64,000 bases of DNA from Octopus bimaculoides (taxonomy: Eukaryota), in contig NC_069006.1 of the NCBI RefSeq assembly GCF_001194135.2, positions 26,096,782-26,160,781 on the forward strand, given 5' to 3'. The notes under the pieces are model-generated. The model had not been told where the DNA came from, searched no databases, and saw only the letters and a program-made list of their open reading frames with translations. Position numbers and translations under genes: made by a program. Below, piece after piece: positions 33,667-57,809 of this stretch (within the stretch, counting starts at the first letter, position 1; every line of letters starts with the position of its first letter).

Positions 33667-36600
33667 GGATGAGAGCTGGAAATGTTTAGTGTAGAAGACA
33701 TGTAGCAGTGCTCAAATAATTTGAACTTAAAACTCTGAAATCTTTATCCAGGACCAGGTTAATTGGGTAAAAAGTGGCTGTAAAAGAAATCCAGGTGAGC
33801 TGATATGGAGATAAGAATGCAGATAAACACAATTATTTTGGGGGTGTATAAACCAAGATACACATAACTAAATATATTCAGAAGATAAATACATGTACAT
33901 GCATATATATATATATAAGATAGATAGATAGATACATACATAAATAAAAAGATAGATAAATAGACAGACAGCTGGATGGACGGACAGACAGATAAATACA
34001 TAGACAAATATATTTACATTGACCATTATATATTTATCTTTACTGGTTGAGGTAGGGGGTATTGCCCATAGCCTTTGCAGTCTCTCTGAGACCAGTGAGA
34101 GATTGATGTTATGTTTAAACTATTGCTGGTCAACATCTGCAGGAAGGACATGACCAAGGAAAAGATTCCAGAGGGATGAAGCTCTGAGGAGGAAGGAACG
34201 GTTAGTGTTTGGGCACACCAGGAGTGTATATTTGTGCATGTGTGTCTCTGTATTTGCCTGTATCTGTGTATATTGGTGTAAGCACATGTCATGTTGTCTC
34301 TCTCTCTCTTTATATTGAAATGTAAATTAGATGGTTAATAAATACTGGTGAAGCACTCAAAGACAGTGCTTCAGCATGGGCACAGCCTACCCATCAAAAA
34401 CTAGCTTTAAAAAAAAAAGTATAAAAATCCCTTTGTTTCCCTTTCTTTCTTTGTTGTTGAATTTGGTTTATTTTTAAAACTGTTTTTGTTATTTGTTTCA
34501 GGAAACACACCATGGATGGTCAATTATACTGTGAACCACACTTTCCTCATGACTCGGTCAGTTCACCATCCTCTCTCACAAATGATAAGGACAAGGTAAC
34601 TATTACTCTCCTCATTTTCATTAACTTTTCTCGTTTATTCAATAATTAACATGATATATAATACCAGTTATATTCTGGGGTTGGTGTAATCAAACTCCAC
34701 TTCTACCACCACCACCCGTACTAAAATCACTGGCTTTCTCCCTATTTGGAAACCTTGTCATCACAGATTCTTTATTTTACATTTTATTGTTGTTTATCTG
34801 GCCTCAGATTAGCCATGAATAAACAAGCCTATGGTCAGTGTCATTCCAGTTCTGTATATATATGTATATATACACAAATATACAAAAAAACAACACTCAT
34901 TATTATATTAGGAGATTCTACACACATTTTAACACTTTAAAGTATACTTATATATATATATAAACCCATGCTAGCATGGAAAGCGGACGTTAAACGATGA
35001 TGATGATGATATATATAAGGTTGAGGAGGGTATTGGATTTAACCAAACCCCGGAGGATACAGGTAATACCGAGTAAGTGCTGTATACCGATTAGTTAGCC
35101 CCAGTCGTTGTATGAACAGGATTGGGGATTATAGGTCGTGTATTAGCGTGTGTATATGTAAATATATAAAAACAAAAAGATAAAGAGAGCAAAGGTAAGG
35201 TTGAAGAATTTTATGGATAGAGTCTTACAGCTGTTTCTGGGAAGATCCAGTACTTCCCTTCATCGGAGACAGAAAAAATAAAGTTATCTATTATTATATC
35301 CANNNNNNNNNNNNNNNNNNNNNNNNNNNNNNNNNNNNNNNNNNNNNNNNNNNNNNNNNNNNNNNNNNNNNNNNNNNNNNNNNNNNNNNNNNNNNNNNNN
35401 NNNNNNNNNNNNNNNNNNNNNNNNNNNNNNNNNNNNNNNNNNNNNNNNNNNNNNNNNNNNNNNNNNNNNNNNNNNNNNNNNNNNNNNNNNNNNNNNNNNN
35501 NNNNNNNNNNNNNNNNNNNNNNNNNNNNNNNNNNNNNNNNNNNNNNNNNNNNNNNNNNNNNNNNNNNNNNNNNNNNNNNNNNNNNNNNNNNNNNNNNNNN
35601 NNNNNNNNNNNNNNNNNNNNNNNNNNNNNNNNNNNNNNNNNNNNNNNNNNNNNNNNNNNNNNNNNNNNNNNNNNNNNNNNNNNNNNNNNNNNNNNNNNNN
35701 NNNNNNNNNNNNNNNNNNNNNNNNNNNNNNNNNNNNNNNNNNNNNNNNNNNNNNNNNNNNNNNNNNNNNNNNNNNNNNNNNNNNNNNNNNNNNNNNNNNN
35801 NNNNNNNNNNNNNNNNNNNNNNNNNNNNNNNNNNNNNNNNNNNNNNNNNNNNNNNNNNNNNNNNNNNNNNNNNNNNNNNNNNNNNNNNNNNNNNNNNNNN
35901 NNNNNNNNNNNNNNNNNNNNNNNNNNNNNNNNNNNNNNNNNNNNNNNNNNNNNNNNNNNNNNNNNNNNNNNNNNNNNNNNNNNNNNNNNNNNNNNNNNNN
36001 NNNNNNNNNNNNNNNNNNNNNNNNNNNNNNNNNNNNNNNNNNNNNNNNNNNNNNNNNNNNNNNNNNNNNNNNNNNNNNNNNNNNNNNNNNNNNNNNNNNN
36101 NNNNNNNNNNNNNNNNNNNNNNNNNNNNNNNNNNNNNNNNNNNNNNNNNNNNNNNCCCCCCCCGGTCACCGAAATGAAATGTAAGACTACTTAAGGAATT
36201 GTATTTATTGTCTGTTCTGAGAGCAGTGCCACTGCTGTAGTGGGGTCGGCTGTCTCATGGCCAAACTGTCAACTCTCTGTTGTCTTATGTAAAAAAAAAA
36301 GGAAAAAAAAGCAAAAGAAAACCCCAGCTTTTAATGAAATGGAGGGATGTAAGCACTTGTGTGCTTCGTGCTCAGTGTTGTCTCACTTGTGAAGTGGAAG
36401 ATGAAGTCATTCGAAGAAGCTGTGTGAACAGAAGCACAACCATAGCAGTTGCTGTTGTTATTGTTGTGGTAGTAGAAGTAGTAGTAGTAGTAGTAGTAGT
36501 ATGTGATATGGTCACCACCCAATAAGGTGGACTGTCTGTCAGATATATGTATATATATATAGAATATCTGGTTATCGAGAGGAGAGATGACCTCGGTCAG

Positions 36601-39600
36601 ATTGTGGGTATAAGCGGGTGAGTTGCAAGTTATTAAGAGAGGAAGCAACTATGGATATGAAACAAGTTTGCGGAGCTGGTTTGCATCAAGGCTGGTTTCT
36701 CTCTTTTCTCCAAAGACACAGCATTTGTGGTAACATGATCTGAAACAGTCGTTAAGGTGTTGACTGCATTAAAAATGTAGATTTTTACCGAAACACCTGA
36801 AGGAAACGTCATAAGAAGCAGGGATTATCTCATTTGATACTACAGAACAGGTAAATGGTAAATATTTATTTCTTTTAAGGCATGGCTCTGTGGATAAGAA
36901 GTTTGCTTCAAGGCTAAGTGAAATAGGCAGTGACCCAGCATGGCCACAGTCCATTGAATGAAGTGAGTAAAAAAAAAGTAAGAGACAATAGTGACCAGTG
37001 GTCAAGTGAATAGATGCATTACTTTGGGCTGTTTCCATTAATCCCCGAGGTCTTAGAACAAGAGAAATGGTTTCGTAGTTGTTAGAGATTAAATAAATGG
37101 TTCTGCCTTTCCATTCTGATAATAGAAAAAAGAATTAAGACCAGAAAGATGTGAGAGATTTGTCTGACAGTTGTTAAGTTAAACAGATAAATAAGTAAAC
37201 GGAGATAAGTCTGTCTAGACAATAGACGTAAAAAAAAAAAAATAATAATAATACTAATGGTAATTGTATCTCCAAGTCGTTAATTTACTAATGTAATCAA
37301 TTCATTTAACAATGTGTTCATTATTGATTGCAGGCCACTAATTGAATTGATGATGGCTTAAGTTTTCTTCTTTGTTATTTGGAGAAGAGATTAGGAAACC
37401 AGATTCTACGAAAAGATTTTATTGTTTTTCTTTGTTGCATTTCAGAGAATATTTATCATATCTTCCAAACACCAGATCAACGATGACAAATTCATTTCAC
37501 TAAATTCTTCATTATTTTCAAAATCAATTGAAACAAACGCAGAATATTTTAACAGAAATATGGTAACAAAAGGGTTAAAGGGATCTAAATGAAAACCTTT
37601 TGTCAAAACAACCTGTCTCGTCAGAAATGTGTTATCAAAAACATTAAACTGTTGACTGATCAATGTTGGAAATTATGTAATATTATTTATGGCTGCATTT
37701 TCTGGTGGAATCCAATGTACTTCTCTGGTGCTGGTGCCACTGCACCCAGTTACACTATATAAAGTATCTGGTATTGGGACAAGCCTTAGAAACCATCCCC
37801 AAAATGGAATGTTTCGAAGGAGCTGTCACCCTCCCCCCCCCCCCCTGACTGTTAGAAGGCCAGTGACACTGAACACAGAACTGTCCAACCCATTGTATAC
37901 AATGGACCTGACAATGATGATGATGGTGGTGACGGCAATGGAAACAATTACTCTTACAAGTTTTAATTGTACATGTAATATGTCTCTTGTTCAGTATTAT
38001 TCTAATTTGGTTATTTCTGTTGTTTTGTGTGTTCATTATGAAATATGTTTGTTGTTTTGAAGACAAGAAGTGTTTTTATAACCCTTTAAGTTGCAAAGTT
38101 ATTTTCTTTGTAACAACTACAATGTTCATTGCACTGAATTGATCTGGAAGTTCATTATGGACTGTTAACGAAGTTAGAATGATAATGAGTTGATGATGTA
38201 TATATAATTAAGGTTTGCTTTGTAATAATAATAGAAGCCACAGAGCTTTAGTTACCAGTGTCTGGTTAAATGTGTATAATTTAGTAGTGGTAGTAGTAGC
38301 AACAGCAGTAGTAGTAATAAGGCTTTACAAAAGAGGGTTTACTAAAAACGTTGGGGACAGAAGAGGACCATGTGGGGGTTAGATAAATGGAAAAAGTAGA
38401 AAAATGGTGATGATATAAATTCTAATATAAATTCCTTGAAAGAGTGAGCTCTTTCAAGGAATTTATCTTAGAATTTGTGTCTTTAATAGAGAGAGATTTC
38501 CTAGGGCTGCTCAAGAAAACCCCACAAAACCTCTAGGGCAAGTGCCCTCTTCACATCATTTTCCTTCAATTTACAGACACACATGCTTATGGGGTAGGCC
38601 TGTTCACTGGGACTAATCTTGGAACATTCATCCACCTTTTAACAAAATTGCTGGGAAAGTGTGGGTAGAATAATAATAATAATAATCTCTTCTACTGTAG
38701 GCACAAGGCTTGAAATTTTGTGGGGAGGGGACTCATTGATTATTTTGACCCCAGTGTTTCACTGGTACTTATTTTATCAACCCTGAAAGGATGAAAGGCA
38801 AAGTCAACCATGACAGAATTTGAACTCAGAATATAGTGACGAGTAAAATGCCTCTAAGCATTTCGTCCACCATAATAATAATAATAATAATAATAACAAC
38901 AATACATTGTAGTAGAAAGTAAAATAGTAAAACAACAACAACAAAAAGAGAAACAAAAAGAAGCTATTAAAGTGGGGGGAAGTACTTTTTCAACGATGGT
39001 ACTTTCTACTTAACTGTTCTTATCAAACTAACCAGAGACTATTAATTAACTAATTGGCTACCACTTTCAGTAAATAAAATAACTGCATTGTTAGTTTATA
39101 CCATGAATGGAATATGAGGTTGTTGTTATTGTGCCTTAATTAGTCTTCATAGTCTCTCTATTTTCCTCTGGCCTCTCCAACAACAACGACAACAACCCAT
39201 TGGCGAGCTGGCAGAATCGTTAGCACACCAGGCATAATGCTTAGTGGTATTTCGCCCGTTGCTACGTTCTGAGTTCAAATTTCACCGAGGTCGACTTTAC
39301 CTTTCATCCTTTCGGGGTCAATGAAATAAGTACCAGTTACGCACAAGGGTTGATGTAATTGACTCGTCCCCTCCCTTGAACTTGCTGGCCATGTGCCAAA
39401 CATTATTATTATTATTGTTGTTGTTGTTATGATTTTCATTATCTCTGACTCTTGTGAACTTTACTGCTTATGACTACCACAATAAATACACTGTGTGTTT
39501 ATAAGTTTGTGAAAATTCATTTGCAATTACAATCATTTATTTTTTTGCTCTCTTTTTTCCCCAGATGTTTGAGTTGTTGGAGAGAATGCAGAGTGACAGA

Positions 39601-41386
39601 ATAGACAACCAAAGGTGTGACATGTCTACATTTCACAAGGTAAGTCTTAAGCCTCCATCATTTACCTTCCTTTATTTCATTAATATCCTATTGAGACGGG
39701 ACTTGCAAGGTGTGCCTTTCATGCTGGACTCTCCATTTAATTGTATTAATGCTCTGTTGTACTCACCTAAAATACACATCTTTATCTACTGATGGCCTCA
39801 CAAACCCATTTGAATATATCTCAGTTGAAAGACTCTTGAGGTAGTAAAGGTGACACACAAGTGGCATAATGTCAGAATTAGCACCATTTGCTGAATGGTT
39901 TCAATGTTAACCTCTCCTCACATCCGCCTTGTCTGTTTTAGTCATCTTCACCAATGACAGTCCATCACAAGTTTCTTCCCGTTTTATCTACTCGACACAT
40001 CCATTTATTCATCTGTTTCCGCATCATTTATTGCAAAAGATGAGTAGCTATCATTTGTATCGCAGTTCACTGAAATATTCTCTAATTAAAACTATATAAA
40101 GGGCAGAGAATAGAACACTGAAGAGGTTGGGCCCCACTTAAAAGTTAACCACACTCTTATGAATATGAACAAGTTAGTTTTGTTTTTAACATGTCTGTAT
40201 GTGGGAGTGTGTGGAGAAGGAGAAAATGCAAATTTGACAATCTTTATAAAGGACAAACCTATACCAGTTACATGCTGTGATTGGATAGTTTAATGTTTTA
40301 TATATAGATTTATATGTAGATTTATATAATGTGTGTTTGTGTGTAAGGTCACATGCACACACATATAAACAAAGGAGGAATATTTCGTATTGGAGTGGCC
40401 TTCCTCCTTGAATGTATATCAAATTATTTCTTGCTTTATTTTCATTCGACTCCACTATCGAAAAGAATAACTGTTAGATATATATATATGCATATGTGCA
40501 ATGAAAATTGTATTTCACTCACGGTCACTTGAGATTTAAGAAAAAAAAAACCACTATGATTCCCAAGAACAAATCTGGTCAGGACGATGCTTATGTTGGA
40601 CGTAAGTGGCAGTCTCAGAGAAAAGCTGCCAGACAAACAATATCGTCCTTCATCGAACTTCACAAGAGGAATTACGAAATTGTGTTGAGCGAGTTTTTAA
40701 AAGTCAGCATTTATTTATTTATTTGTCTATTGTTAATTTCTTAATTTGTTTTGATTGTTATTTTGTTTTGTTTTCTTGATATAATTTTAATTTCAATTGG
40801 ACATATATTTATATATATATATATATATNNNNNNNNNNNNNNNNNNNNNNNNNNNNNNNNNNNNNNNNNNNNNNNNNNNNNNNNNNNNNNNNNNNNNNNN
40901 NNNNNNNNNNNNNNNNNNNNNNNNNNNNNNNNNNNNNNNNNNNNNNNNNNNNNNNNNNNNNNNNNNNNNNNNNNNNNNNNNNNNNNNNNNNNNNNNNNNN
41001 NNNNNNNNNNNNNNNNNNNNNNNNNNNNNNNNNNNNNNNNNNNNNNNNNNNNNNNNNNNNNNNNNNNNNNNNNNNNNNNNNNNNNNNNNNNNNNNNNNNN
41101 NNNNNNNNNNNNNNNNNNNNNNNNNNNNNNNNNNNNNNNNNNNNNNNNNNNNNNNNNNNNNNNNNNNNNNNNNNNNNNNNNNNNNNNNNNNNNNNNNNNN
41201 NNNNNNNNNNNNNNNNNNNNNNNNNNNNNNNNNNNNNNNNNNNNNNNNNNNNNNNNNNNNNNNNNNNNNNNNNNNNNNNNNNNNNNNNNNNNNNNNNNNN
41301 NNNNNNNNNNNNNNNNNNNNNNNNNNNNNNNNNNNNNNNNNNNTATGTTGGAGAAGCAACTCAATGCTAATCCCTGTATATTTATG

Positions 41387-41427
<41 letters not shown>

Positions 41428-42127
41428 AAAAAGGGTAATTGTGCTGGTAAACAAATTAGATACAATAAATATATCGAATATATTAAATATGATATATTCG
41501 ATATGTTTATTGCATTTGATTTGTTCATCCCCATAATTGCTTCTAGATCCACTTAACCTAATCCCTCTTATAGCCGTTCTTTACCCTGTGGAATCGGTCT
41601 CTTGTAAAGATATCAGAGTTTAAGTTTGAATCTTTTGAGCACTTCTAAGTGTTGTCTTTTTAGAGAATCTCTGGCTCTCATCTCTGAACTATGTACATAT
41701 ATATATGTGTGTGTGTGTCTGATGATGGCTTAGCTGGCTAAAACTTCAAAGTCACTGTCAACAATATTCTTGTTTAAGAATAATAAATTTGTGCTCTACA
41801 AAAGTATAGAGTGACCCATCAGATTGATGTAAAATTGCTTTTATTAAAACGGAACCTAAACACACACACACACACACATTATGTGTGTGTGTAAATTGTC
41901 ATTAATGCAAACAAATGGAGGAATAGAAGAAACGGAAGCTGGAAATGCATAGAGAATATATTAGAATTAACCAGAATTTTAATTTTATTTTCATATATAT
42001 ATATGTATTTTTGTAATCACAAAATAACCTAACTCTTTGTTCTTGGAAACTACATTGATCGTGTATATATATATATTTGTATATGCAAGCATGTTTGTAT
42101 ACATAGATACACAAGCGTGTATGTATA

Positions 42128-42161
<34 letters not shown>

Positions 42162-42919
42162 TATATTATGTAAAATATATTTTCTTCTACTGCAGAGGGC
42201 ATCCAACAACAACACGCCAACATCCAACAGCTCTAACCATATATCCACTGGAGCAGGTAACAAACTCCAGTCTCCGTCACTTGGAGACATGTCTCACACA
42301 TCCAACAACAGCAACAGTTGTAGTATGAGTAGTAGTAACAGCACGCCTGTTCCAGACAACCAAAAATCCAGAAAGGAAGGGGTAAGTACGACGACATTGT
42401 TGCTCTTCGTTGCATTTGTCTCTTTTTTAGTCTTTAAAATTTGATTCCAACAATGGTGGGTCTTTTTTTTTATCACAGAAAAAAAAAAGACAACTATTAA
42501 ACAGGATGTTTAAAATCAATTGTTAAATTGCCATCAAACAACAACTGCAGCAACAACAAAAGTTTGGGATTGGTACTAAACAAAGTTGTAATTTAAAGTG
42601 TTGAGTGGAATGGAGTGGAGTGGAGTGGAGTGGAGTGGAGTGGATGAGTGTGGTTGGAGGGGAGGTGGAGGAGGGAAGGCATTACAAGAAACTCAACAAC
42701 AAATTGTCTGTTTTATTTGCCAGCAGTAGTTGGGGGGGGGGGGTTAGTTTTTTTTCTTTTCGTGTTTTTCATTGGATTTTCCCCGCAAAAGAATTACCAT
42801 CTCTTTTGTGATGTTACTAACTGTTGACGAAGAACGATTGTAATCATCAAAAATATGACGTATAAATATAAAGAAGCACATATTTGTATATACATGATGG
42901 AAAACACACTCACACACAT

Positions 42920-42959
<40 letters not shown>

Positions 42960-45900
42960 GGTGTTTGGGCTAAATTTGACTGTTTGCTTGAAAGAAAAGA
43001 AAGCAACATCCCATCCCAAAATGTAAAGAATTAAAGAATCATATCATATCAACTAAATTATGGTTGGGAGGTAACAATTTGCTCAAAGTCTTTTCCATTC
43101 TTCCCGAGCATCAAACTAATACACCTGNNNNNNNNNNNNNNNNNNNNNNNNNNNNNNNNNNNNNNNNNNNNNNNNNNNNNNNNNNNNNNNNNNNNNNNNN
43201 NNNNNNNNNNNNNNNNNNNGACACGTAAAAGCACCCACTACACTCTCTGAGTGGTTGGCGTTAGGAAGGGCATCCAGCTGTAGAAACTCTGCCAAATCAG
43301 ACTGGAGCCTGGTGTTGCCATCCGGTTTCACCAGTCCTCAGTCAAATCGTCCAACCCATGCTAGCATGGAAAGCGGACGTTAAACGATGATGATGATGAT
43401 GATGATATAAAGACTAGTGCTAAATCTATTTTCCATTTCCTTCATCAATTATTATCTCAACTAATCCTGTGGAATTCCTGATAGATCGTGAGGAAATATA
43501 TCCCAACCTTGAATGACACCAGGTAGCCAGCAACTGTGGATGTACTTTACTCAACACACTCATTGACATATACCCATTACACACACACACACACACACAC
43601 ATGCATGGAAATAGATACTCTTGAAGCAAAAGTAGTGTGTGTTTGTGTGTGTATATATATATTCACATACACACACACACATGCATATGCACACACAACA
43701 TTCTGTTTAATATTCAGTGTCAAGATTAAGTAGAAATTATATATGTTAGTGTAAAAAATAATAAACAAAAGGAAAAAAAAAATGTGCAAAACTCTTATAA
43801 AAAGTCAGTCCCTTCTGTGAGTGAAACAATAGAATTGAAGGCAGCTGGTGATGGTGATGGTGTGTGTGTGTGTGTGTGTTGGCAAGTAGTAAATCCAAGA
43901 CGTCACCCAAGTTGGACAGAATATTTCATTGTGAGGAAGAAAAGCCTGTCATTGTGGTCAGAACTCTCTAATTGGAAAAAGATTGAGGTAACGTTAGAAC
44001 TGTTAATTATTATCATTATTGTTATTATCCTCCTCCTCCTCATCATTATTATTATTATTATTATTAAGGTGGCAAGCTGACAGAATCGTTAGCATGGTGG
44101 ACAAAATGCTACTGTGTCTGTTTTAGCAGGGATTTTACGGCTAGATGCCCTTCCTAACACCAACCACTCCGCAGAAAACACAATGCACTGCCTGGTCCAG
44201 GAATTGAACCCATGGTCTAGTAATCACAAGTGCAATACCAGGCCATGAGCCTATATAATACATAATGCAAAAATACCTGCAGACTGCAATTACCAATAAA
44301 AATGTTTCTATGTGGCCTGATATCAAATGCTCCATGGTTTGATGTTTTGGGTCCCCTGTCTTAGGCCACATCTAAAGAAAGGTTACCCCCAACCTCAGTT
44401 AACACTCATAAACATACTCCTGCCTCTGGCCCACTGGCACGCTGTCTCCTCTCTCTGCCTTTTTCACTGGTACTATAATGGCCTCTGCTCTTTGAAAGCT
44501 GGCTTTTAAACAACAATAAGCAACCACCTTTGTCTAGCAATTCCTTCAATCATCTCAGTTGAATGAGGCTTTACCATTCTCTACAGTATACGTGAGACCC
44601 TTCCATATTTATATACACATATCATTATTCATACAAATTTCACATTCAGCTTCTATGTCTCCTTGTATTATATACACCCAAGCACTCCTTGTATTATATA
44701 CACCCAAGCACTCCTTGTATTATATACACCCAAGCACTCCTTGTATTATTCCTCATTTTGTTAAGAATTTAAGCAAAGTAAGGCAGGTGTTTATTTTGCT
44801 GCGTGGGTTTTACTCTTTTTAAAATGCTGGTTGTCAGTCTGGGACGCACAGAAGTGTGTGTGTGTGCGCGCGCAAATGTGTGCATACCAGTGAGTCTTTG
44901 TTGCTCTATTTCCTATCTAAACCTTGCATGTGCATATGTCTATATATATCTATATATGTGCGTTTGTATAGAGATATGTGTATAGCTGCTGTCTTCTGAC
45001 AGTCATACCCGTCATACAAAAGTCATACCCGTCATACAAAAGTCATACCCGTCATACAAGAGTGACACTGCAACAAGCAGGTGCTCTTCTTCCTGTTTTT
45101 TTGAAATGGATTTATCTCGTTAATGAGTGGGCAACCGCAAGGATGAGTCAGTGACTGGAAGTGAGGACATTAACGAAATCTCTCTGCCCCCTCCCCTTAT
45201 ACGTAGACGCTTGCAGTGTTAATTGATCATCTCAGATCTGTAACCTTTTTGATTCCTTCTTTGTTTACTACATCAAAGTGACCCCCAATGTGTATGTGTG
45301 TGTGTGTGTAAAGTCAACACTGTGTTATTAAGAAGAAGGAGTGTCAACCTAGTTTATGAGACACTGGGGTGGGTACAGAGAAGTGTTTACTCTGGCTGCA
45401 TGTGTTTGTGTGGGTGTAGGAAGAAAGACACTGCAGTTTCTGGTTGTATATACACATGAACATATGGCCATTTAATTTATACACACACACACACACAATC
45501 TAAACCATAGATGAAATAGTTTCATCAATTGTATATCCTGGATTTCAGCTGCATAGAATTCTGCATTGTACTCTTCTGTGTTGGATTACTACTATGTGAT
45601 CTGATAGCCAGGTTCACTAGAAGAGCTTTCTGTGATGGCCACATGATTCTCTGAATCTATAAATCTATTTATAGATAATGTGGTTGTGTGTCTGTGTGCT
45701 TATATTTCACTCACTGTGCCTCACCATTTAACCCATTAAATTCTTCCAATAGGTCATAATGTTATTAAACGGATCTGTGATAAATTTTGTTGTTGATAAA
45801 AGAAATATTGGTTTCCAGTGTTTTAACAGTTGTGGAATTTCTCTGGTATTTATACCTACACTACTCTTTGATCAGTTTGGAATCCTGTCACCAAATGGTG

Positions 45901-48900
45901 TCTTATTCCAAGATGTACACTGGAAAAAAAATTGCTAGAACATTTCATAATAAAAAACAAAAAGAATGCCTTGTGGTATTTAATCCTGCCAAGGTTAAGT
46001 TTTTCCTTTGTCCCTCAGGGTCCCATAAAATGATGCAACTCCATTCAAGGGTACTTGTGTTCCTTTGGGATTCTCAGCCAGGTTTCTTTTATCTTGTACT
46101 TGTTTCAGTCATTAGACTATGGCCATGCTGGGGCACTATCATAAAAACTCTTGAGTATGAGTGAATGAATGATACAGCAAAACATTGTGTTATCACTCTT
46201 TAATCTTGACTAACACACACACACATCGTTTAATGACCCACTTGATGTTAATCTCTCCTCGTAAACTCTGTTGTCTCACTTCCTTTGTGGATGATAAGAT
46301 GGGAGAATCTCCTTTAGCTTGTTGTTGCCAGTCTTCATTCTTTAAAGAAAAGGAACTTCATTAAAGACACTTCAGAATCCCCCCCAAAATACTTCAACTC
46401 TGAACAATATATCACAGTCAAAGATATCTTCAACAGCTACTACTACTACTACTACTGCTGCTGCTGCTTACTTTTGTTGTGACAAACTGAAGCAGGGCTT
46501 GTATAGAGTCACTCGACATGCCCAAAATAGCTGCCAAATCTCCCTCAAATTATATCTTATCATCTTAAAAAGGAGAGGGCACGTATGCATGCAGGACATC
46601 CTTGATATCTAAGATCTTAAATAAAGACTGGACAGTCATGGCTGGATCCTTTTTCATCACAGTTTTGCCTGTTCAGTCACATCTGACCCATGGCTAAACG
46701 GCAACAATTGATATAGCAAACACAGATGAACATATCTGAACTGTTTACAAGTTTGTGTCCTATACACATCACTGCTCAGTGCTTCCAGTCTACATTTCAT
46801 CTGCGGTGAGCTGCTGAATAGCACAACCAGTCACTTATGGGAAGATTGTAAGAGGGACCTGTTTCTTATGTCAGTTCACAGTGTCTGTGGCTTTCTGGTC
46901 TCTGCTGCTGATGAGGAGATAACCACTCCAAAATGCAAGCATCCAACAGTCTGCTTAAGGAATGCTATGGACTGACTTGGTGTATTCACACCTATTTGTT
47001 TACAGCAAGGATTTTCCTCCATGGCGAAATGCATTGAATTGCTTCCTTACAGGTTCAAATTGTGATTCAAACATATTTAAACTTCCAACAAGTTTAACTC
47101 AAAAAGTTTTGATCAATGGCAAGCTGTGGTAGTTAAACGTTTCTGAAGTGAAACGCAACAAGATCTAACTTGAGACCCCAAAGTTGTAAAGTAAACATTG
47201 TAATCACACAGTCATGCCTGACCTCGTTTTTTTTTTTTTTGATAAAGAAGGAAGTAGATGTCTCCTCCTTGTGAACAGTGTGTGCTTTAACGGATGTTGG
47301 TGTGAAGGAATCCGTTTTAGAATTGGAGTCTATTTTGGGCCTGAGGCACGACTGATTAAGGAACGGTGAGGGAGACACAAAATACAAATTAAAATATTAA
47401 CACATGATGGATTTTTAACAAATTATTTGAAATGCAGCAGGTGGGTGAGTGTTTGTGTAGAGAGACAGACAGACAGACAGGAGGGAGAGAGAGAGAGAAC
47501 TATACTATCAAGTGTGTCCTTCTTTCTTTAAGATGATAGTCTGTTCTCTAAGGGAGATTTAGCTACCGTTTCTTACGGATCAGCTGTCTGACATCATGAC
47601 TTGCTCATTATCTCTCACATGCCTTAATGGTCATTATTATTAAAGCTCGTTAATAAAAAATTCAGCTTTTATTTATTTCCTTCTGCCAAATCTGGTTGCC
47701 ACAGCATTACAGATTTCATCATTTTGTGCATCCATAGTTTTCGAAAGGAAATCATTTAACCATGCAGAACTCAAACTTAACGAGTTTAATAATCACAAAT
47801 GTAATGACATCGGGAGATGTTTTAACGAGGACTCTGATGATAATTGCCTCAGTGGAAGCCGTGCAGTGGTTGTTATTGTTTGAGAGAAGCAGTGATGGTG
47901 ATAGTATTTGCCTAAAAGCATAAATATTTTGATTTTCTAATTTAGTGAGACGCACCCCTGCGTGTGTGTGTGTGGTGCAGGTGCTGGGGTGCTCATGTGT
48001 CCTCCATATGAGCCGTATGAAGAAGCAATATGATCTCTGTGTGGCATTCATTACTCAAATGCTGTATGTGTCTACTTTTGGTATATTGGTGAAGTAGGGT
48101 AAAAGTTGAGAGCTGTATGTTTGAGGTGATGGGCAGGGGTGGAATGCCATGCAGGACATTCAGCATGGATGTGAGTGTGTGGGGAGGATGTCCTAATTAA
48201 CCTCTTACACGATGTCCTCATTAACATGGGTTTGGTTGCTGTTTGCTGCAAATAATTTAAAGTTACAATAATAATAATAATAATAATAATAATGATGATG
48301 ATGATAATAATAATAGTTTATTATTTTTTTTGGGGGGGAGGGGTAGTGTCAGCCCTGGTTCTTTCTACCCCCATTGATCAGGTTGGCACTGCAAGTCGCA
48401 TTGGCACGCCATGTGTCTGTCTGTCTGTCTGTCTGTGCACAAGTCTCATTTTTTTTATTGGTGTCAGTCACTGCACTTTGGCCATGCTGGAGCACCACCT
48501 TTAGTCAAGCAAATCGGCACCAGGACTTATTCTTTGTAAGCCTAGTACTTATTCTATTGGTCTGTTTTGCCGAACCACTAAGTTACGGGGATGCAAACAT
48601 ACCAACATCAGTTGTCAAGCAATGGTGGGGAGGACAAACACACACACACACAAACCACAATACTAAATGCATTTTGGTTGGTGATTGTATTCAAAAAGAA
48701 AGCTGATGGCAGTCGCTTCCAAACAATTAATATGGTTTTTGTTATCTAATTTTTATTGAACAAACATCTAATTAAATACACTGATTAAGTGTTTCAAGTG
48801 ATTGTCATCAAAATAATCCCCAAAATAGTTTGAGGGATTTAGTAAAATAATTAAATTCATTTCAATAAAGCTGCCGTCTTGAACCCAACAAAGAGGGTCT

Positions 48901-49152
48901 TACTTAAAATTAGGATCAAAGGTTTAATTTAGAATAGGGAGATTACAAGATATATAAGTTTATGTGCCTGGTGTATATAAAATAGATAGTTTTATATCGT
49001 GGCCCCAAGCACCATCTCAATTGGTTGATGTTAAAAGTGTGGAAGGAACATGTCGAGTTAAATCTCTCATCTTGTGCAGGTTGTGTTTAGTCATTCAGTA
49101 AAGAGTCAGTGGTAACAATACTTCAATACCACAATATATATGTGTGTGTGTG

Positions 49153-49197
<45 letters not shown>

Positions 49198-50274
49198 TCA
49201 CACATACACATGGATGTATACATCCATGTGTATATATGTAAGTGTGTGTGCATATATATCTACATATATTTTTTCAGAAGTCACTTACAGCAATAAACAA
49301 ATGGACAGAAAGACATGACTGATATATATACACACACACACATATACCTACATATATACACAACACATTCAAATTAACTTTTCCAGTCCAAAAGAGATTT
49401 TTAACCCAATATTTTCCTGGCTTTATTTGCTTCAAAATCCATTCTTACAAAAAGCAATTATTTCTCATTCTTTCAAAACTTATTATTTATTATGATGTCA
49501 ACAATAATTCCAAATATCTTTTTTCTTTTTCTCTTTTTCCAGCAGCAGGATTTCTTTGATACCATCATGAACCTCCAGTCTCGTCGTATCGATGACCAAC
49601 GTTGTCCTCTTCCTCAAACATTGACGCTTTCCTTACCTGTAATTATCTGCTTTACCTTTTTTCTTCTTACAATCTTCTTCTTCTTCTTCTTCTTCCATCT
49701 CTATTGGCTATTATTCTCTTATCACTGGTTTCGGTTGTCAGACTACGACCATGCTGGGGCACCACTTGAAAGATTTCTTTAGTTGACCAATCAACCCCAG
49801 TATTTCACTTTAAGCTGGATACTTATTTCGTCGATCTCTTTTCATTGAACCATCTCTCTTCATTTCATAAACATAAACAAACCAACACTGTTTGTCAAAC
49901 AGTGAGAAACAAAGACACACACACACACACTAGGCTTCCACATAGTTTTGCATCAACCAAATTCCCTCTTGAGGCATTGGTTGGCCCATGGCTATTCTCA
50001 AAAATACCTACCCAAAGATGTTATTCTATAGAATTTATTATCTCCTCCACGACCCCTGTCTGTCTGTCTGTCTGTCCATCTCTCCCCCACTTCCTCCCTG
50101 CTGAAACAGACAGTGCAGCCTGGTGCTGTCTTCTGCCTTGCCAGACCCTGTCTAACCGTCCAACCCGATGCCAGCATTGAAAATGGACTTTAAATGATGT
50201 TGACGACACGTGTGTGTGTGTGTGATTTTGCTTGGAATTAGGCAAATGTGTCTGTTGATTGTCGGGCATAATTT

Positions 50275-50309
<35 letters not shown>

Positions 50310-53300
50310 NNNNNNNNNNNNNNNNNNNNNNNNNNNNNNNNNNNNNNNNNNNNNNNNNNNNNNNNNNNNNNNNNNNNNNNNNNNNNNNNNNNNNNNNNNN
50401 NNNNNNNNNNNNNNNNNNNNNNNNNNNNNNNNNNNNNNNNNNNNNNNNNNNNNNNNNNNNNNNNNNNNNNNNNNNNNNNNNNNNNNNNNNNNNNNNNNNN
50501 NNNNNNNNNNNNNNNNNNNNNNNNNNNNNNNNNNNNNNNNNNNNNNNNNNNNNNNNNNNNNNNNNNNNNNNNNNNNNNNNNNNNNNNNNNNNNNNNNNNN
50601 NNNNNNNNNNNNNNNNNNNNNNNNNNNNNNNNNNNNNNNNNNNNNNNNNNNNNNNNNNNNNNNNNNNNNNNNNNNNNNNNNNNNNNNNNNNNNNNNNNNN
50701 NNNNNNNNNNNNNNNNNNNNNNNNNNNNNNNNNNNNNNNNNNNNNNNNNNNNNGGTGGGTGGGTGGGGCGTACATGAGAGAAAGAAGCAGTTTGTCACCA
50801 TTTTAGCTCACATGATGACAACGTGGACACACATGGAAACACTTACGTACATGTGTGTGTGTGTGTGCATATACACATACAATCACACACCACACACTGC
50901 CTTGTGGGTTTGTCTCCAAAATTCTACTGATGAGGCCTTCTGATGATCAAAGCCTGTTGTAGAAAACACTTGTCCCAGGTGCTACATGGTGAGATGGGGT
51001 GCTCATATGTCCTCCATATGAGCCGTATGAAGAAGCAATATGATCTCTGTGTGGCATACATTACTCAAATGCTGTATGTGTCTATTTTTGGTGTATTGGT
51101 GAAGTAGGTTAAAAGTTGAGAGCTATATGTTTGAAGTGATGGGCAAGGATGGAATGTCATACACACACATATGATGAGCTTCTTTTAGTTTCCTTCTACT
51201 AAATCCGTTCACAGTCCAAGGCTGTAGCGGAAGATACTTAGCCAGAGTGCCGCACGGTGATATTGAACTCACAGCCATGTGGTTGCCAAACAAACACCTC
51301 AACCACACAGCCATGCTTGTGCCCCCTCCATCCATCACTTGGTGTCCCTGTTGGTGATGGTGCCATGTAAAAAACAGACATCCAGTCCACTCTGTAAAGT
51401 GGTTGGCATCAGGAAGAGCACCCAGCTGTAGAAACCAAGCCAAAACAGCTGGCTGGAGCCTAGTGCTTCTCTCTCTCCCCCACCGCCAGCCTGGTGCCAG
51501 CTCCTGTTGAACTGTCTAATACATGTCAGCATGTGAAACGGACATTAAATGGTGATGGTGATGTAAACCCACATGCGCAATTCATATGCGCATGATTTTT
51601 GTCAAGTGATATTGTCACTTGAATGACAGGAAATGAGATGAAATGAGTTTTGGTTGTTTTGGAAGGACTTTGAGGCAACAACTGTTGCCATTGTTTTGAG
51701 GATGGAGCACGAAAAACTGGTGATGATGCTGCAACACTATATGGAAAGCATGAAACAAAGATGGTGACGATGGTGGTGATGAAATGCAGTTCAACAGGGT
51801 CAGAGTGAGAGGAGATTGTTGTTTCACAGCGTCAGAGCATAAGAGAGTCTTGGTGAAAGTTTTATAATAAAATTTGTGTCATAAAATGGAATCCTAATCA
51901 GGTTAATTTTTGTGGCATCAGATTAAATATGGACATTTGGCATTTCATTCGGTTTTACACAAATGCACAGTTAGAAAATTGGAGATATGTTTTTGTTTTT
52001 TTTTCCAATGTACAAAGAGGATAACAAGATGTGTTTACATCTGTTTCTAGTTCTATCTTGAAAAGACTTAAAACCTGTAGGTTGTCTACTTTAAAATTAA
52101 TTTTTCTAATACATAACTGCATTTGGCCATAAGTAGTTATTATTTAATCATGTCACTGACAAACATGCAATATGCAAATTGGTCTTGCTCTTTTGACTAA
52201 GTTTTGGTTTGTGGTGGACTTAAATAGCAATTTACTGTAAGTTCTCTTCATAGGTGGAAGAATGAAAGATGATTTGTCCACTGATGAGAAATGTCAGGGC
52301 AATTTCCTTCGTTTTTTTTTTCTATGTAGAAAGGGAATAACAAGATGCATTTACGTCTATTTACAGTTCTTTAGCAAAAGAGGATTTAAAACTTTAGTTT
52401 ATACACTTTATCTTAGGTTTTCTAATATATTCTGTGCTGTGCCTAATATTTATTATTATTATTATTATTAGAAATCATCATTATTGGCAAACTTTTTAGT
52501 ATTTAATTTTCAGTAAAATGAAACATTGTCTCTCCGTTGTTTAACAATGATTATTTTGTTGGTATTTAGATGCTGTCCAAACCTGGGCCTTACCCCATGA
52601 TTGTTCAGATGCAAGCAAATGGTTACCGGCTGGAAGAAGCAAGCCTCAACCCTGGCAAGGTCAAGCTAGAGACTTCAAAGTTTGAAGATGCTAAAGTGTA
52701 CCGCAAAGATTTTCGTGGTAAAGTAAGTGTTCCCGTTTTCTTTTCTTTTTTTGTTGTTGTTTTTGTTTTCTTATGTTTGGTGAGACAAAGAAGGGTCCAT
52801 TACTGATGGTCCATTACAGAATGACATTGTAGGGTAAGTGTAAAAGGCCAGACCTAGCCAGGTAGAATATTTGGGCTGGATAGAGCGGAGTCAATCCTTT
52901 AACATTCGGCCTCCTCTGTCGATTCTAAAACTTATTTATTTACATTGTTTTTTTAATTAATCATTCATTATCTTCTAGCTTCAAGATTTCTATGATACAT
53001 TGTATGTTTTAGAATGACATTGTAGGCTAGGTATGAGAGGTCAGATTTGGCCAGTTTGAACATAACATGGGTAGAATGTAAGCACTAGATACGGCTAATT
53101 CAACCCTTTAGAATTCAAATTACTCTGTCAAATGTAACACTTGATGTGATTGTTTATTTTTAGAATGACATTGTAGGGTTTGTGTGAGAGGCCAGATGTG
53201 GCTGGTTTGAAGATAAAACAGACGCAGTATTTGGGCCAGATATGGCTGGGTTCAAATGCTAAATGGTTAATCCATTACTTGGTTTTGGGGCCCTTAAATG

Positions 53301-56300
53301 GAATTGCTTCTGTTGTAAATCTTCAGATCAAGGTTTTCAGCCTGGGGATAAATTCTATGCACAAGTAACAGTTGAACACTGGGGTCGATGTAATCAACTC
53401 GTCCCCTCGCCCAAAATTGCTGGCTTTGTGCCAAAATTTGAAACCATTATTATTATTATTTTGTTTATTTATTTTCAGGAACATATTAATTACATAATGT
53501 ATGATGAAACCATTGGACCAATTGTGATGTCAATAAAGTTAGAAAATATGTCTTCATCAGAACAGATTTACATTATATTAAGGTAAAGAAAAATCTCTTT
53601 AATTACTGTTTATTTAATTAACAGAATCTGCTCCAGGACCCACCTCCCACCCATATATTCCCAATTTGAATCAGAATCATTAACTTCTCCAGAACTTTTT
53701 TCTTCTTTTCCTCCGCCTCATCATCATCATCATCATCATTATTAAATTGACCCCTGAACTTGACTTTTACTTTTTATTGACCCCAGAAGAGCAAACCTGA
53801 AGTCATCCTTGGCGGGATTTGAACTTGTAACCCAAAGGGTTGTCACTTGATATCACAAGTCTTTTGTCTGCTCTTCTCTCCATCCTGTTTGAGCACAGAA
53901 TGAATGTCACACCTTCCTCTTGCCAACATCCACAGAACTTGTTGTTTATTTTATTTGTGAGCCTGAGTCAGCTTACTCAAAGTCAGGTTTGGGATTGACT
54001 AGGTTGATTGACCTTTGACCCCATCATCTTGGGGGGGGGGCATCCATGTTGACTGACCTTTGACCCTGGACGCAATTTCAGTTAGATTTATTTGAGTTTC
54101 ATCTTCTGTTAATTTATTGATTCTGTCACTGTTTGTTGATTGATTGCTCTATTGATCTTTTATAGGACACGGCAGTTTACAAAACGGAAACTCGTTCAGT
54201 TCAATAAAAATGATAATCCGACACCACAGAGTCTAGCAAGGGTAAATATGGACCCTTTCCTTCGATTTTAGATTCATTAATTTTCTTTCACAATGTTGGT
54301 GTTGTTGGTGTTGTGAACTTGATCAAAAGTGATTCCATATATCGTGAATATAATAAAAGTTGACAATTTTTTTTTTTTATCTTAGATTTTTTTTTGTAAA
54401 CAAATAATACAATATTACATAAGCATTTTATTATGTTTCTTTCTTTTCTGGAAACTCGACGCGTACCGGCAGCTGATGGCTCACGGACCAGCACCGGGCC
54501 ACAGACCACTACTTCGAGCAGCACTGTCATAGGGTGTGAATTTAGAGTGATTTGGCTTCTATTTCTAGCCTTGTGAACGACTGTATTCAGTAGATATACC
54601 TTTGTGGGCATATCAGGCGCACTTAGTCCCAAAACATATCATGGGCCCTATGCAAAGTCGGGCCTACCATAAGCTTTAATATACTAAAAAACCTATTTTC
54701 CTCAATATGCCGAAGTTGGGAGACGTTTAATGTCTGCGTAAACCCAAAAGGTTTATCAAAGTTGTCTCCCTTGTGTTGAGAAAACGTTTTGAGATTAGCT
54801 TTTTTTTTAAGATGGTTTAAAATTGATTTGTGAAACAAAATTACTGAGCGGTGTAGCATTCATTAAAATTAAAATACTTTATTAACGAGCCATGATAAGT
54901 TCACACACACACACACACACACACAGTCTCTCTCTCTCTCTCTCTCTGTCACGCACGCACATATACACTCTCTTACGCATTCTCTATCTCTCACACACTC
55001 TCTCTCTCTCTCTCTCTCTATCGATCACATATTTAAACATTTCTGGCAATTTTAGACTAAATAGAATGACTGCTGCTGCTGTTTCCACAAGTTTGTCGTT
55101 TTAACGAAACACTATCAATGGTGTAAAAATGGCTGGTAAATCACAATTTGATTAAAAACAATACCAATTGTGGAAAATCTGATTTCTATGTATTTATTTT
55201 AAAAAGAAATTGCTTCCTACATTTTACAGGGTGAAAAACCATTCTCACTCTCTCCTTCCTTTTTGTCCCGTCTCACTTGACAATTCTACTAGAATTGGTA
55301 AAATGTAGTTTAATATCAACAGGCTGTAGAGATGTTAGCTGGGGAGAATTTTTAATCACCGCAAGATTAAGCCGTTCCGACCATAACCGTCTTGTCTTTA
55401 CGGTGATATCCATTCCACCGTATTCTTCTTATAGAGGAGCAAGAGTCGATACGAACAAGATTTGGTTGCCGTGTTTCGTATGTTGAGAAACCACCAGGAG
55501 GCGCTCTCGTTGACAGTTATGCATTTAGTAGCAAAGGGGAATAACTCTTACCTGTATATTCTCCAACTCTAACTTATTTTAGAATCTTTTCAGGTTTTTT
55601 ATTTTTACTTATCGATCTGTTTATTTATTTCAGGCCCTTCTTGATGAAATAAATGTTGAAAGGGTTTCACCTTCCTTATCACTCAAGGTAAGTCTCAATA
55701 TGTTTCCATCTTTAATTACCGGTATTTTCTTTCCTCTTTCTCTCTCTCTATTTCCACTCACACACTTTAGGTAATGCAGTGGAGTAAAAAGGTTGATTTT
55801 AGAATCAACAGTTCCCAGTCTTAGGGTGCACAACTTAAACTGGAAGACGCAATACAACTTTGAAATGGTCACAAATTCAAAATCTTTTACTGTTTGAAAT
55901 ATCTGGGAAAACGTTCCTGAATATATTAAACAGTGAGAGAGATTAGGTATGAGAGCCACAACACAGCATTTACTGGAGGTTTTATTATGTTATACTATAA
56001 GAAATTCTACATACAATGTTCAGTAACATTCACTAGAGAGGTATGAGGTCCACAACACAACATTTACTGAAAACCCAAAACAGAAATATTTTCCAAAGAA
56101 AAGTATTAGCCATTCACTTTGCTCTGCTATATTGTTGTTGTTGTTGTCTTGCAAATCCACTCTCAAGACTTTGGTTGGACTGTCGCTGTAGTAGAAGACC
56201 CTTGCCTAAGGTGCTACACAGTGGAACCAAACCCAGAACCATGTGGTTGGGAAGCAAACTTCTTACCACACAGCCTTGCCTGTGCCTATAACCTGAGAGT

Positions 56301-56690
56301 CTTGGAGAAATATATTGTTATCGCTTGATGCTTCCAGTTTTATATGGGGTCATCCGTTTATTGAATCAAGATATGTTTGAAGATTTAATGGGAAGAGAGG
56401 TTGCTATTGCCGTAAAGTCTTTTAGCCAAATGTTTGGTCTGGAGTTGGAAATAGTGACAGATGGACAAACAGTCAGACATGTCTTATAATTCCTATTTGA
56501 ACTTCTTTTTTTTATACAGGCATCTGACCTAATCATGGATTATGATGAACATGTTTTATGTACTACTTATAAGTTTGGCATCATTTACCAACGTTTTGGC
56601 CAGGTGAGATCATTTTGCAAATATTTTCTGAATGATTTTAAAGGGTTTATTTATATATACACACACACACATATATATACACACATACAT

Positions 56691-56721
<31 letters not shown>

Positions 56722-57777
56722 CCAATAGGTAGATAAGTTTGGTGAAGCAAGGATTTAGAACTCAAATCATGAGTATATATAATTTCTACCGATTATTGAC
56801 CCTTTAGCATTTAAACCAGTCTTATCCAGCTGAAATATTCTTTCTGTTTTGTGTTCAAACTGGCCAGATCCAGTCTCTCGCACCTACCCTACAATGTCTT
56901 TCTAAAAATAAACAATCACATCATCGAAATCTCAAAGCTATGAGATAATCCATGATTAATTGAAAACCATATGAATAAATAATTATGACATTTGACAAAA
57001 TAATCTGAATGCCAAAGGGTTAACGAGATAACGTGATTAGTATAAACTGTTGTTACAGAAATGTGAGATTAACTGGGGTTTTTTTGTGTTTTTAGAAAAT
57101 ATTACTTTTTTTTTTTTTATTTGAATTCTTTAGGTAAAAGAAGAAGACTTGTTTGGAAATAGGAACCATGGACCTGCTATGGACGAATTCTTAGAACTTA
57201 TAGGAGATCGAGTGAAGCTGAAAGACTTTCCTCANNNNNNNNNNNNNNNNNNNNNNNNNNNNNNNNNNNNNNNNNNNNNNNNNNNNNNNNNNNNNNNNNN
57301 NNNNNNNNNNNNNNNNNNNNNNNNNNNNNNNNNNNNNNNNNNNNNNNNNNNNNNNNNNNNNNNNNNNNNNNNNNNNNNNNNNNNNNNNNNNNNNNNNNNN
57401 NNNNNNNNNNNNNNNNNNNNNNNNNNNNNNNNNNNNNNNNNNNNNNNNNNNNNNNNNNNNNNNNNNNNNNNNNNNNNNNNNNNNNNNNNNNNNNNNNNNN
57501 NNNNNNNNNNNNNNNNNNNNNNNNNNNNNNNNNNNNNNNNNNNNNNNNNNNNNNNNNNNNNNNNNNNNNNNNNNNNNNNNNNNNNNNNNNNNNNNNNNNN
57601 NNNNNNNNNNNNNNNNNNNNNNNNNNNNNNNNNNNNNNNNNNNNNNNNNNNNNNNNNNNNNNNNNNNNNNNNNNNNNNNNNNNNNNNNNNNNNNNNNNNN
57701 NNNNNNNNNNNNNNNNNNNNNNNNNNNNNNNNNNNNNNNNNNNNNNNNNNNNNNNNNNNNNNNNNNNNNNNNNNNNN

Positions 57778-57809
<32 letters not shown>

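Follow-up and report, generated by a model that had tools for sequence, protein, structure and literature searches.

A Rap1GAP gene of Octopus bimaculoides with two GoLoco exons, and a second GoLoco exon shared across Lophotrochozoa

GoLoco motifs bind GDP-bound G-alpha-i/o subunits and act as guanine nucleotide dissociation inhibitors (GDIs), and Rap1GAP is among the few proteins that connect Gi/o directly with a small-GTPase switch. Here, we report that the Rap1GAP gene of Octopus bimaculoides carries two GoLoco motifs on separate exons which are joined in one mRNA, that an alternative first exon gives rise to transcripts bypassing the first motif, and that the second GoLoco exon is shared with other Lophotrochozoa. 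The gene lies in a stretch of 64,000 nucleotides (NCBI RefSeq assembly GCF_001194135.2, contig NC_069006.1, positions 26,096,782 to 26,160,781), which is called the window throughout. Octopus coordinates are positions in this window, and all octopus exons described are on its forward strand.

Two GoLoco motifs in one octopus mRNA

To place the gene, the concatenated exons of the window were scanned with Pfam and scored 119 bits for Rap_GAP (PF02145) and 108 bits for Rap-GAP_dimer (PF21022), the cut-off being 27 bits for each. The best 120 protein matches, drawn from many parts of the animal kingdom, were overwhelmingly named rap1 GTPase-activating protein 1, with a core identity of 60–70%. The window is also 100% identical to the O. 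bimaculoides protein fragment A0A0L8FH80, and a protein search with a 170-amino-acid (aa) N-terminal query returned this same-species fragment as its sole match. The region is the 5' half of the O. bimaculoides Rap1GAP orthologue, set apart from SIPA1 or tuberin, and the identification as Rap1GAP made in an initial annotation of this DNA stands on both the domain scores and the annotated best matches.

The first GoLoco exon (GoLoco-1) occupies positions 39565–39639 (75 nucleotides (nt), 25 aa) and the second (GoLoco-2) positions 49543–49638 (96 nt, 32 aa). Between them lies a Ser/Asn-rich, low-complexity spacer exon (S/N exon; 42196–42381, 186 nt, 62 aa), and the conserved Rap1GAP core is opened by an exon at 52570–52722 (153 nt), which covers part of A0A0L8FH80_OCTBM with 100% identity. 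All four exons have polypyrimidine-AG acceptors and GT donors. Together with a 54-nt exon described below, they form a series of 75, 186, 96, 54 and 153 nt in which every member is phase 0-0, that is, symmetric, so that the frame is kept on skipping. When each peptide was scanned alone against Pfam GoLoco (PF02188, cut-off 25.1 bits), GoLoco-1 reached 30.0 bits and GoLoco-2 reached 41.1 bits. The layout proposed from the letters alone, two GoLoco motifs on separate phase 0-0 exons with a 62-aa Ser/Asn-rich phase 0-0 exon between them, is thus borne out, with both motifs above the cut-off, the AG/GT borders verified and the spacer joined to both motif exons in RNA.

A GoLoco motif consists of an amphipathic helix and a conserved Gln, followed by a [D/E]-Q-R triad whose Arg touches GDP in the RGS14 and LGN complexes. 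In GoLoco-2, the helix, the Gln and the triad are all present, giving a canonical core, and the peptide aligns with the LGN GoLoco peptide of PDB 4g5s at E = 1.3e-4. GoLoco-1 keeps the helix, the Gln, the Q-R and both arginines, while Asn replaces the acidic residue of the triad, and its alignment with the solved LGN peptide is weaker (E = 0.12). This substitution lies at 39604–39612, where the octopus reads RIDNQR; the corresponding site of Argonauta (L005, about 22243–22251) reads RINNQR, whereas every non-cephalopod GoLoco-1 or single motif compared reads R-x-D-[DE]-Q-R. By alignment, the one GoLoco present in other Rap1GAPs is the orthologue of GoLoco-1. When the window was searched in all six frames with an 8-residue GoLoco core pattern, only the two motif sites and one spurious site without a helix matched, and shuffled sequence gave a mean of 0.6 matches.

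The RNA evidence was drawn from Logan contigs of public O. bimaculoides runs, with the contigs of four to eight of nine runs compared with each exon. In runs X1, X3, X4 and X5, contigs of 2.8–4.2 kb carry the upstream exon, GoLoco-1, the S/N exon, GoLoco-2, the 54-nt exon, the exon at 52570 and downstream sequence, with no mismatches. On the X1 contig, GoLoco-1 occupies positions 181–255, the S/N exon 256–441, GoLoco-2 442–537, the 54-nt exon 538–591 and the exon at 52570 592–744. The junctions 39639→42196 and 42381→49543 are direct, with no inserted letters (255/256 and 441/442 on the X1 contig), and the frame stays open across them. Contigs that begin at the S/N exon, found in X2, X7, X13 and X16, continue through GoLoco-2 and run unbroken for 1.7–4 kb. 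GoLoco-1 was recovered in contigs of eight runs, and both GoLoco exons stood on the same RNA contigs in every octopus run examined. The shared contigs and the single open frame establish that both motifs belong to one transcript, as had been supposed.

The window contains 12 assembly gaps, two of which fall within the range of these exons. Both of them, 40829–41343 and 43128–43219, are intronic and hold no exon of the main mRNA, because the RNA junctions contain no extra letters: across the former, RNA joins 39639, and also position 40702 of an alternative exon treated below, directly to 42196, and across the latter it joins 42381 directly to 49543. The connection from GoLoco-2 to the exon at 52570 is not direct. 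A 54-nt exon encoding LQEPEAEVPKQDEDIVRE (letters CTCCAGGAACCAGAGGCAGAAGTCCCGAAACAGGATGAAGATATTGTCAGAGAG) sits between them in the RNA contigs, and a search for it throughout the window did not find it. In Argonauta, the orthologous 54-nt exon (HPEPEVEVPKQDEDIVRE) is at L005:39489–39542, about 1.4 kb 3' of GoLoco-2. Since the octopus exon is absent from the window letters and its Argonauta counterpart follows GoLoco-2 at this distance, it is probably located in the assembly gap at 50310–50753.

The second GoLoco exon across Lophotrochozoa

An orthologous second GoLoco exon of 84–96 nt and phase 0-0 was present at all seven lophotrochozoan loci examined, octopus included. However, deposited gene models include it only in Batillaria and Argonauta and leave it out at four loci. 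In Batillaria attramentaria, the exon (93 nt, phase 0-0, AG/GT borders) lies 407 nt after GoLoco-1, and in Argonauta hians it covers about 93 nt (L005 38026–38118, a span given by tblastn and not by splice borders). The four exons left out of models all have AG/GT borders. That of Mytilus edulis (84 nt, L002:25291–25374, GADFYELLLKYQSRRLEDQRCALPVPLQ) is missing from three deposited isoforms, and that of Lottia gigantea (93 nt, L004:6108–6200) lies, like GoLoco-1 of this species, upstream of a truncated model. The remaining two belong to Sinanodonta woodiana (84 nt, L003:10139–10222), whose exon reads RRYEDQR and was missed by the first GoLoco pattern and found by tblastn, and to the annelid Owenia fusiformis (87 nt, L006:85717–85803, AHELFESLLRFQAIRMDDQRCHMPLSPNQ). 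All four unannotated exons lie between GoLoco-1 and the next coding exon, and the second exons of Batillaria, Lottia, Mytilus and Owenia score 27–41 bits for Pfam GoLoco. Gene models in several lophotrochozoan genomes therefore miss a real coding exon. The initial annotation had left open whether the tandem arrangement was specific to cephalopods, and the presence of the exon in snails, mussels and an annelid rejects this. It had also named, as a case that would refute its reading, two-motif Rap1GAPs being widespread and already annotated; the exon is indeed widespread in Lophotrochozoa, but it is annotated in only two models.

Deposited proteins seldom display the second motif. Among 121 Rap1GAP homologues, a strict GoLoco core matched once in 88 and twice in one (Batillaria), and no vertebrate isoform among these homologues had two motifs. 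When 1.84 billion representative proteins were searched exhaustively with a profile, the best 150 matches included three two-motif Rap_GAP proteins, from Batillaria, Argonauta and Tigriopus. With a profile built on the tandem region (A1), most matches were short GPSM1 fragments and the Batillaria protein (P0012) was not recovered, so this profile is uninformative on distribution. The protein of Tigriopus californicus (TCAL_06421; P0259/P0306) resembles that of the octopus in combining Rap_GAP with two GoLoco-like motifs. However, about 200 residues separate its motifs, the first of which is divergent (WRFNDQRC), unlike the octopus pair, and the Tigriopus pair was probably gained independently of the lophotrochozoan one.

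As for the origin of the second exon, we compared 22-residue motif peptides of five taxa. Second motifs of different taxa share 56% identity, while within a taxon the first motif shares 42% with the second; the single motifs found in arthropods, a nematode and vertebrates show the same identity (53%) to GoLoco-1 as to GoLoco-2. Since second motifs resemble each other more than they resemble their own GoLoco-1, these sequences most likely reflect a tandem exon duplication of GoLoco-1 before the mollusc/annelid split, which would make the two exons old paralogues.

The spacer has a narrower record than the motif exons. It was found in the two octopods, and the Batillaria model is without it, having a 407-nt intron between its GoLoco exons; these are the loci at which it was sought. 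The independent Argonauta assembly shows the same exon order as the octopus, including the spacer and the 54-nt exon, and its spacer exon is longer, at 87 aa. Argonauta also has two near-identical Rap1GAP models on different contigs (801 and 804 aa; P0158/P0305), which could be haplotigs or a recent duplicate and which differ mainly in the lengths of Ser/Thr/Gly/Asn runs within the spacer exon. Because the two models differ there, spacer length appears to change quickly.

An alternative first exon and the number of motifs

The number of GoLoco motifs varies between octopus transcripts through an alternative first exon, E1b (about 40252–40702), which joins the S/N exon at 42196 in RNA contigs and bypasses GoLoco-1 together with the upstream coding exon of the main form (E0, described below). 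In X2, X7, X13 and X16, contigs carrying GoLoco-1 end exactly 30 nt into the S/N exon, as expected where the assembly graph branches. The second upstream partner of the S/N exon maps to 40673–40702, in the intron after GoLoco-1, and is followed by a GT donor. E1b contigs are colinear with the genome from 40252–40439 to 40702 and then continue at 42196, and they show no splice partner further upstream. Because their 5' ends are colinear with the genome and without an upstream partner, one of them starting in adapter letters, E1b is best understood as an alternative first exon. The junction to 42196 was seen in four runs, and E1b itself occurs in at least 18 RNA runs from six studies. Its mean contig depth relative to the GoLoco-1→S/N contig differed widely between runs, at 36.7 vs 49.5 in X7, 18 vs 61 in X2, 31.6 vs 563 in X13 and 12.8 vs 1210 in X16.

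E1b has its last in-frame stop at 40502, followed in the same frame by an ATG at 40556 with A at position –3. From this sequence, the E1b transcript is predicted to encode a 49-aa alternative N-terminus ahead of a protein with GoLoco-2 only. In Argonauta, the donor position is conserved and the last 30 aa are 63% identical, whereas no similarity can be detected in the DNA; such conservation at the protein level points to coding constraint on E1b.

The symmetric exons had suggested an alternative to this, in which the three exons are skipped as cassettes in some tissues, giving 2, 1 or 0 motifs from one promoter. Any such skip would be in frame, as all the exons are phase 0-0, and the Mytilus and Owenia isoforms and the single Sinanodonta model omit a genomic second GoLoco exon with good splice sites, which is thus optional, or at least missed, in those species. 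However, the octopus contigs offered each exon a fixed set of neighbours. The S/N exon was the sole downstream partner of GoLoco-1 (eight runs), GoLoco-2 was the sole downstream partner of the S/N exon (four runs), GoLoco-2 was joined to the S/N and 54-nt exons only, and the sole upstream partner of the exon at 52570 was the 54-nt exon. No junction skipping GoLoco-1, the S/N exon, GoLoco-2 or the 54-nt exon occurred in the contigs of the runs compared, contigs being prone to drop rare variants, and no zero-motif transcript was seen in the RNA contigs. The unbroken contigs that start at the S/N exon are likewise a weak negative, as assemblers remove short low-coverage bubbles. We therefore regard cassette skipping as rather unlikely in the octopus, and the alternative first exon is the sole mechanism of motif-number change actually observed. 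The proposal of splicing to 2, 1 or 0 motifs accordingly holds in that the number varies, by way of E1b, and fails to find a skipped cassette or a zero-motif form.

The remaining explanations question the tandem motifs themselves. A somewhat less probable one holds that only GoLoco-2 is functional in octopods, GoLoco-1 being in decay, so that the protein acts as a single-GoLoco Rap1GAP. The Asn of RIDNQR and RINNQR at a site that is acidic in all the non-cephalopod GoLoco-1 and single motifs compared would fit decay, as would the Pfam scores of GoLoco-1 (30 bits in octopus and 29 in Argonauta, vs 41 for GoLoco-2), its poorer match to the LGN peptide and its complete loss from the E1b isoform. 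On the other hand, GoLoco-1 passes the Pfam cut-off with its arginines, Gln and amphipathic helix intact, and it differs at just three positions between Octopus and Argonauta, which argues for constraint. Tandem duplicated exons of equal phase usually become mutually exclusive, and in each of the seven species GoLoco-1 and GoLoco-2 are homologous neighbours that share their phase and differ little in length, with the Mytilus, Sinanodonta and Owenia models holding only GoLoco-1. For the octopus, mutual exclusion is refuted by the RNA contigs that carry both exons, and both are included in the Batillaria and Argonauta models, so we consider it very improbable here, though possible in other lineages. 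Even further from credible is an artefact of assembly or annotation, be it a mis-join across gaps or a mixture of exons from two genes. The 12 gaps, two of them inside the range, invite this suspicion, but it is refuted by RNA contigs of several studies, which hold all exons in one open frame with no mismatches, and the independent Argonauta assembly has the identical exon order.

Flanking exons, related proteins and a proposed model of G-alpha coupling

Upstream of GoLoco-1, RNA contigs and homology support the coding exon E0 (34502–34595), which encodes 28 aa and whose ATG at 34512 stands in ACCATGG context. It directly precedes 39565, in frame, in the RNA contigs of the main form, and its counterpart in other Rap1GAPs is the MDGQLYCE.H segment, conserved in molluscs, the annelid and insects. 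In run X16, no fewer than three upstream exons join E0, with contig depths of about 605, 162 and 23, and all of them lie outside the window letters. The commonest continues the frame as ..RCDAPLTLRS, then probably YR, the Y being read from one mismatched letter, and this frame matches the end of a LIM domain detected by Pfam in the Owenia orthologue. In long isoforms, E0 therefore encodes the end of a LIM domain. Searches of the window with tblastn and patterns found no LIM exons, which thus lie outside it or in gaps. The Owenia orthologue has its LIM domain in one protein with GoLoco and Rap_GAP; a separate LIM gene is annotated just upstream in Batillaria; and insect Rap1GAPs retain a TDGELYCQPH remnant. 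By these sequences, an N-terminal LIM domain seems to be present in long lophotrochozoan Rap1GAP isoforms.

A minor alternative 5' exon, E0b, also splices to GoLoco-1. Its verified 3' end at 36818–36850 was located in the window with a 30-mer and is followed by a GT donor at 36851; the X16 contig that carries it extends about 340 nt further upstream and has a depth of 4.2, vs about 1200 for the main form. The exons at 39565 and 52570 each have an ATG immediately 3' of the acceptor, as had been noticed. As a hint of translation starts, these ATGs are mostly incidental: E0 is in frame upstream of 39565, where other species have Leu or Ala, and the Met at 52570 is an internal conserved residue in an alignment that includes the best Logan match (P0002). 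With an in-frame stop at 36812, the ATG at 39565 would be the first in-frame AUG only in the very minor E0b transcript.

Downstream, the exons of the Rap-GAP dimerisation and Rap_GAP domains extend from 53479 to 60018, as placed by tblastn of an Argonauta protein (P0158) on the window, splice contexts and Pfam, with positions approximate to within a few nt. They lie at 53479–53582, 54166–54241, about 55634–55688, 56520–56603, 57134 into a gap, 58362–58514 or a few nt further, 58798–58869, 59359–59445, 59585–59821 and 59944–60018. About 40 residues of the GAP domain, equivalent to Argonauta residues 381–421 (HFRGGLDTSYGQ...STLLPYSEGDSQ), are missing at the gap 57235–57777, so the GAP domain of the window is partial.

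The nearest known system is vertebrate RAP1GAP, which shares with the octopus gene the order of N-terminal GoLoco, Rap-GAP dimerisation and Rap_GAP domains and has alternative 5' ends that alter GoLoco content. It differs in having one GoLoco, full or truncated, against a pair of full motifs in the octopus, each on its own exon and with a low-complexity spacer between them; its isoforms truncate one motif, while the octopus alternative first exon removes a whole one. The full motif of human Rap1GAP1b (Rap1GAPII) prefers G-alpha-o-GDP and the truncated motif of 1a prefers G-alpha-o-GTP, and the N-terminal motif form of human Rap1GAP1 governs membrane recruitment and Rap1 inactivation (PMC12329598). 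GoLoco with Rap_GAP is a recognised conserved metazoan architecture (PMC3971589). Rap1GAPs of insects, chelicerates, a nematode, Mytilus, Tegillarca, Bradybaena and Owenia align with the octopus in the MDGQLYCE.H exon, GoLoco-1 and the PGPYPM core, but these deposited proteins have one GoLoco. The Batillaria protein BaRGS_00030812, a hypothetical protein, has both motifs upstream of Rap_GAP, adjacent and with no spacer exon, and the Argonauta protein GAB1603800.1 (rap1 GTPase-activating protein 1-like isoform X1) has both on the octopus exon plan; neither record name mentions a tandem GoLoco.

Tandem GoLoco motifs with short linkers are otherwise known from GPSM2/LGN, GPSM1/AGS3/Pins, PCP2 and GPSM3/G18, and the octopus GoLoco-2 is closest to the LGN peptide of PDB 4g5s. 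Unlike the octopus protein, these have no Rap_GAP; they link G-alpha-GDP to spindle orientation or serve as GDIs, and do not link it to a GAP of small GTPases. As a side observation, the tandem GoLoco profile matched 14 separate stretches of an uncharacterised protein of Gadus macrocephalus (LOC132446637, P0159, 1162 aa), which would be an unusually large GoLoco array. In the literature searched, we found no paper pairing GoLoco with cephalopods, no relevant mollusc or annelid Rapgap1 paper, and no description of a two-GoLoco Rap1GAP or of a conserved second exon across Lophotrochozoa. The GoLoco plus Rap_GAP architecture, the motif-altering human N-termini and the multi-GoLoco proteins LGN, AGS3, PCP2 and G18 are already known. 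Against this literature, what appears new is a Rap1GAP with a conserved second GoLoco exon, which was already present, silently, in two deposited gene models.

Taken together, we propose a model of octopus Rap1GAP that we consider probable as a whole, comprising a dominant two-GoLoco mRNA, an old duplicated exon, loss of a motif through E1b and coupling to G-alpha. The dominant mRNA encodes, in one frame, the LIM tail, GoLoco-1, the 62-aa spacer, GoLoco-2, the 18-aa linker exon and the dimerisation and catalytic domains. The second GoLoco exon, which is short, of phase 0-0 and placed after GoLoco-1 and before the PGPYPM exon at every lophotrochozoan locus examined, would most likely be a tandem copy of the first. 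Transcripts starting at E1b, downstream of GoLoco-1, run into the spacer exon and are predicted to yield a GoLoco-2-only protein with a different N-terminus. By analogy with the family, one G-alpha-i/o subunit would bind to each GoLoco, so that the two-motif form could hold two subunits across the flexible 62-aa spacer, or one with higher avidity, and the E1b form one. Motif number would then determine the strength with which the activity of Gi/o-coupled receptors recruits or regulates the Rap1-inactivating GAP.

Several points weigh against this model. The RNA evidence consists of contigs and not reads, so that minor isoforms are dropped and depths are contig means, and the motif comparison covers few residues and taxa. 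The E1b leader carries short upstream open reading frames and translation from the ATG at 40556 is a prediction; the octopus E1b frame is short, with just its last 30 aa conserved in Argonauta. The duplication is dated from one side only, the genomic loci scanned being those of molluscs and one annelid. G-alpha binding by either octopus motif is suggested by family knowledge, and the octopod GoLoco-1, with Asn before Q-R and a score just above the cut-off, may bind weakly or with another nucleotide preference.

Beyond the model, we tentatively suggest, as a possibility on which we would not rely, that octopods combined the ancient second exon in the main mRNA with a disordered spacer to form a bivalent detector of Gi/o activity upstream of Rap1, able to bind two G-alpha-i/o subunits at once, with promoter choice (E1b) making the protein monovalent in certain neurons or tissues. 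By analogy with human Rap1GAP1a and 1b, different nucleotide states of G-alpha might also be read by GoLoco-1, with its divergent NQR, and GoLoco-2, with its canonical DQR. The finding is a modest advance in the evolution of domain architecture and not a new kind of system. It extends and enriches the history of the GoLoco module of the Rap1GAP gene beyond the single-motif picture, and the octopus isoform pair, with two motifs vs one, offers a natural test of motif number in G-alpha-dependent Rap1 control.

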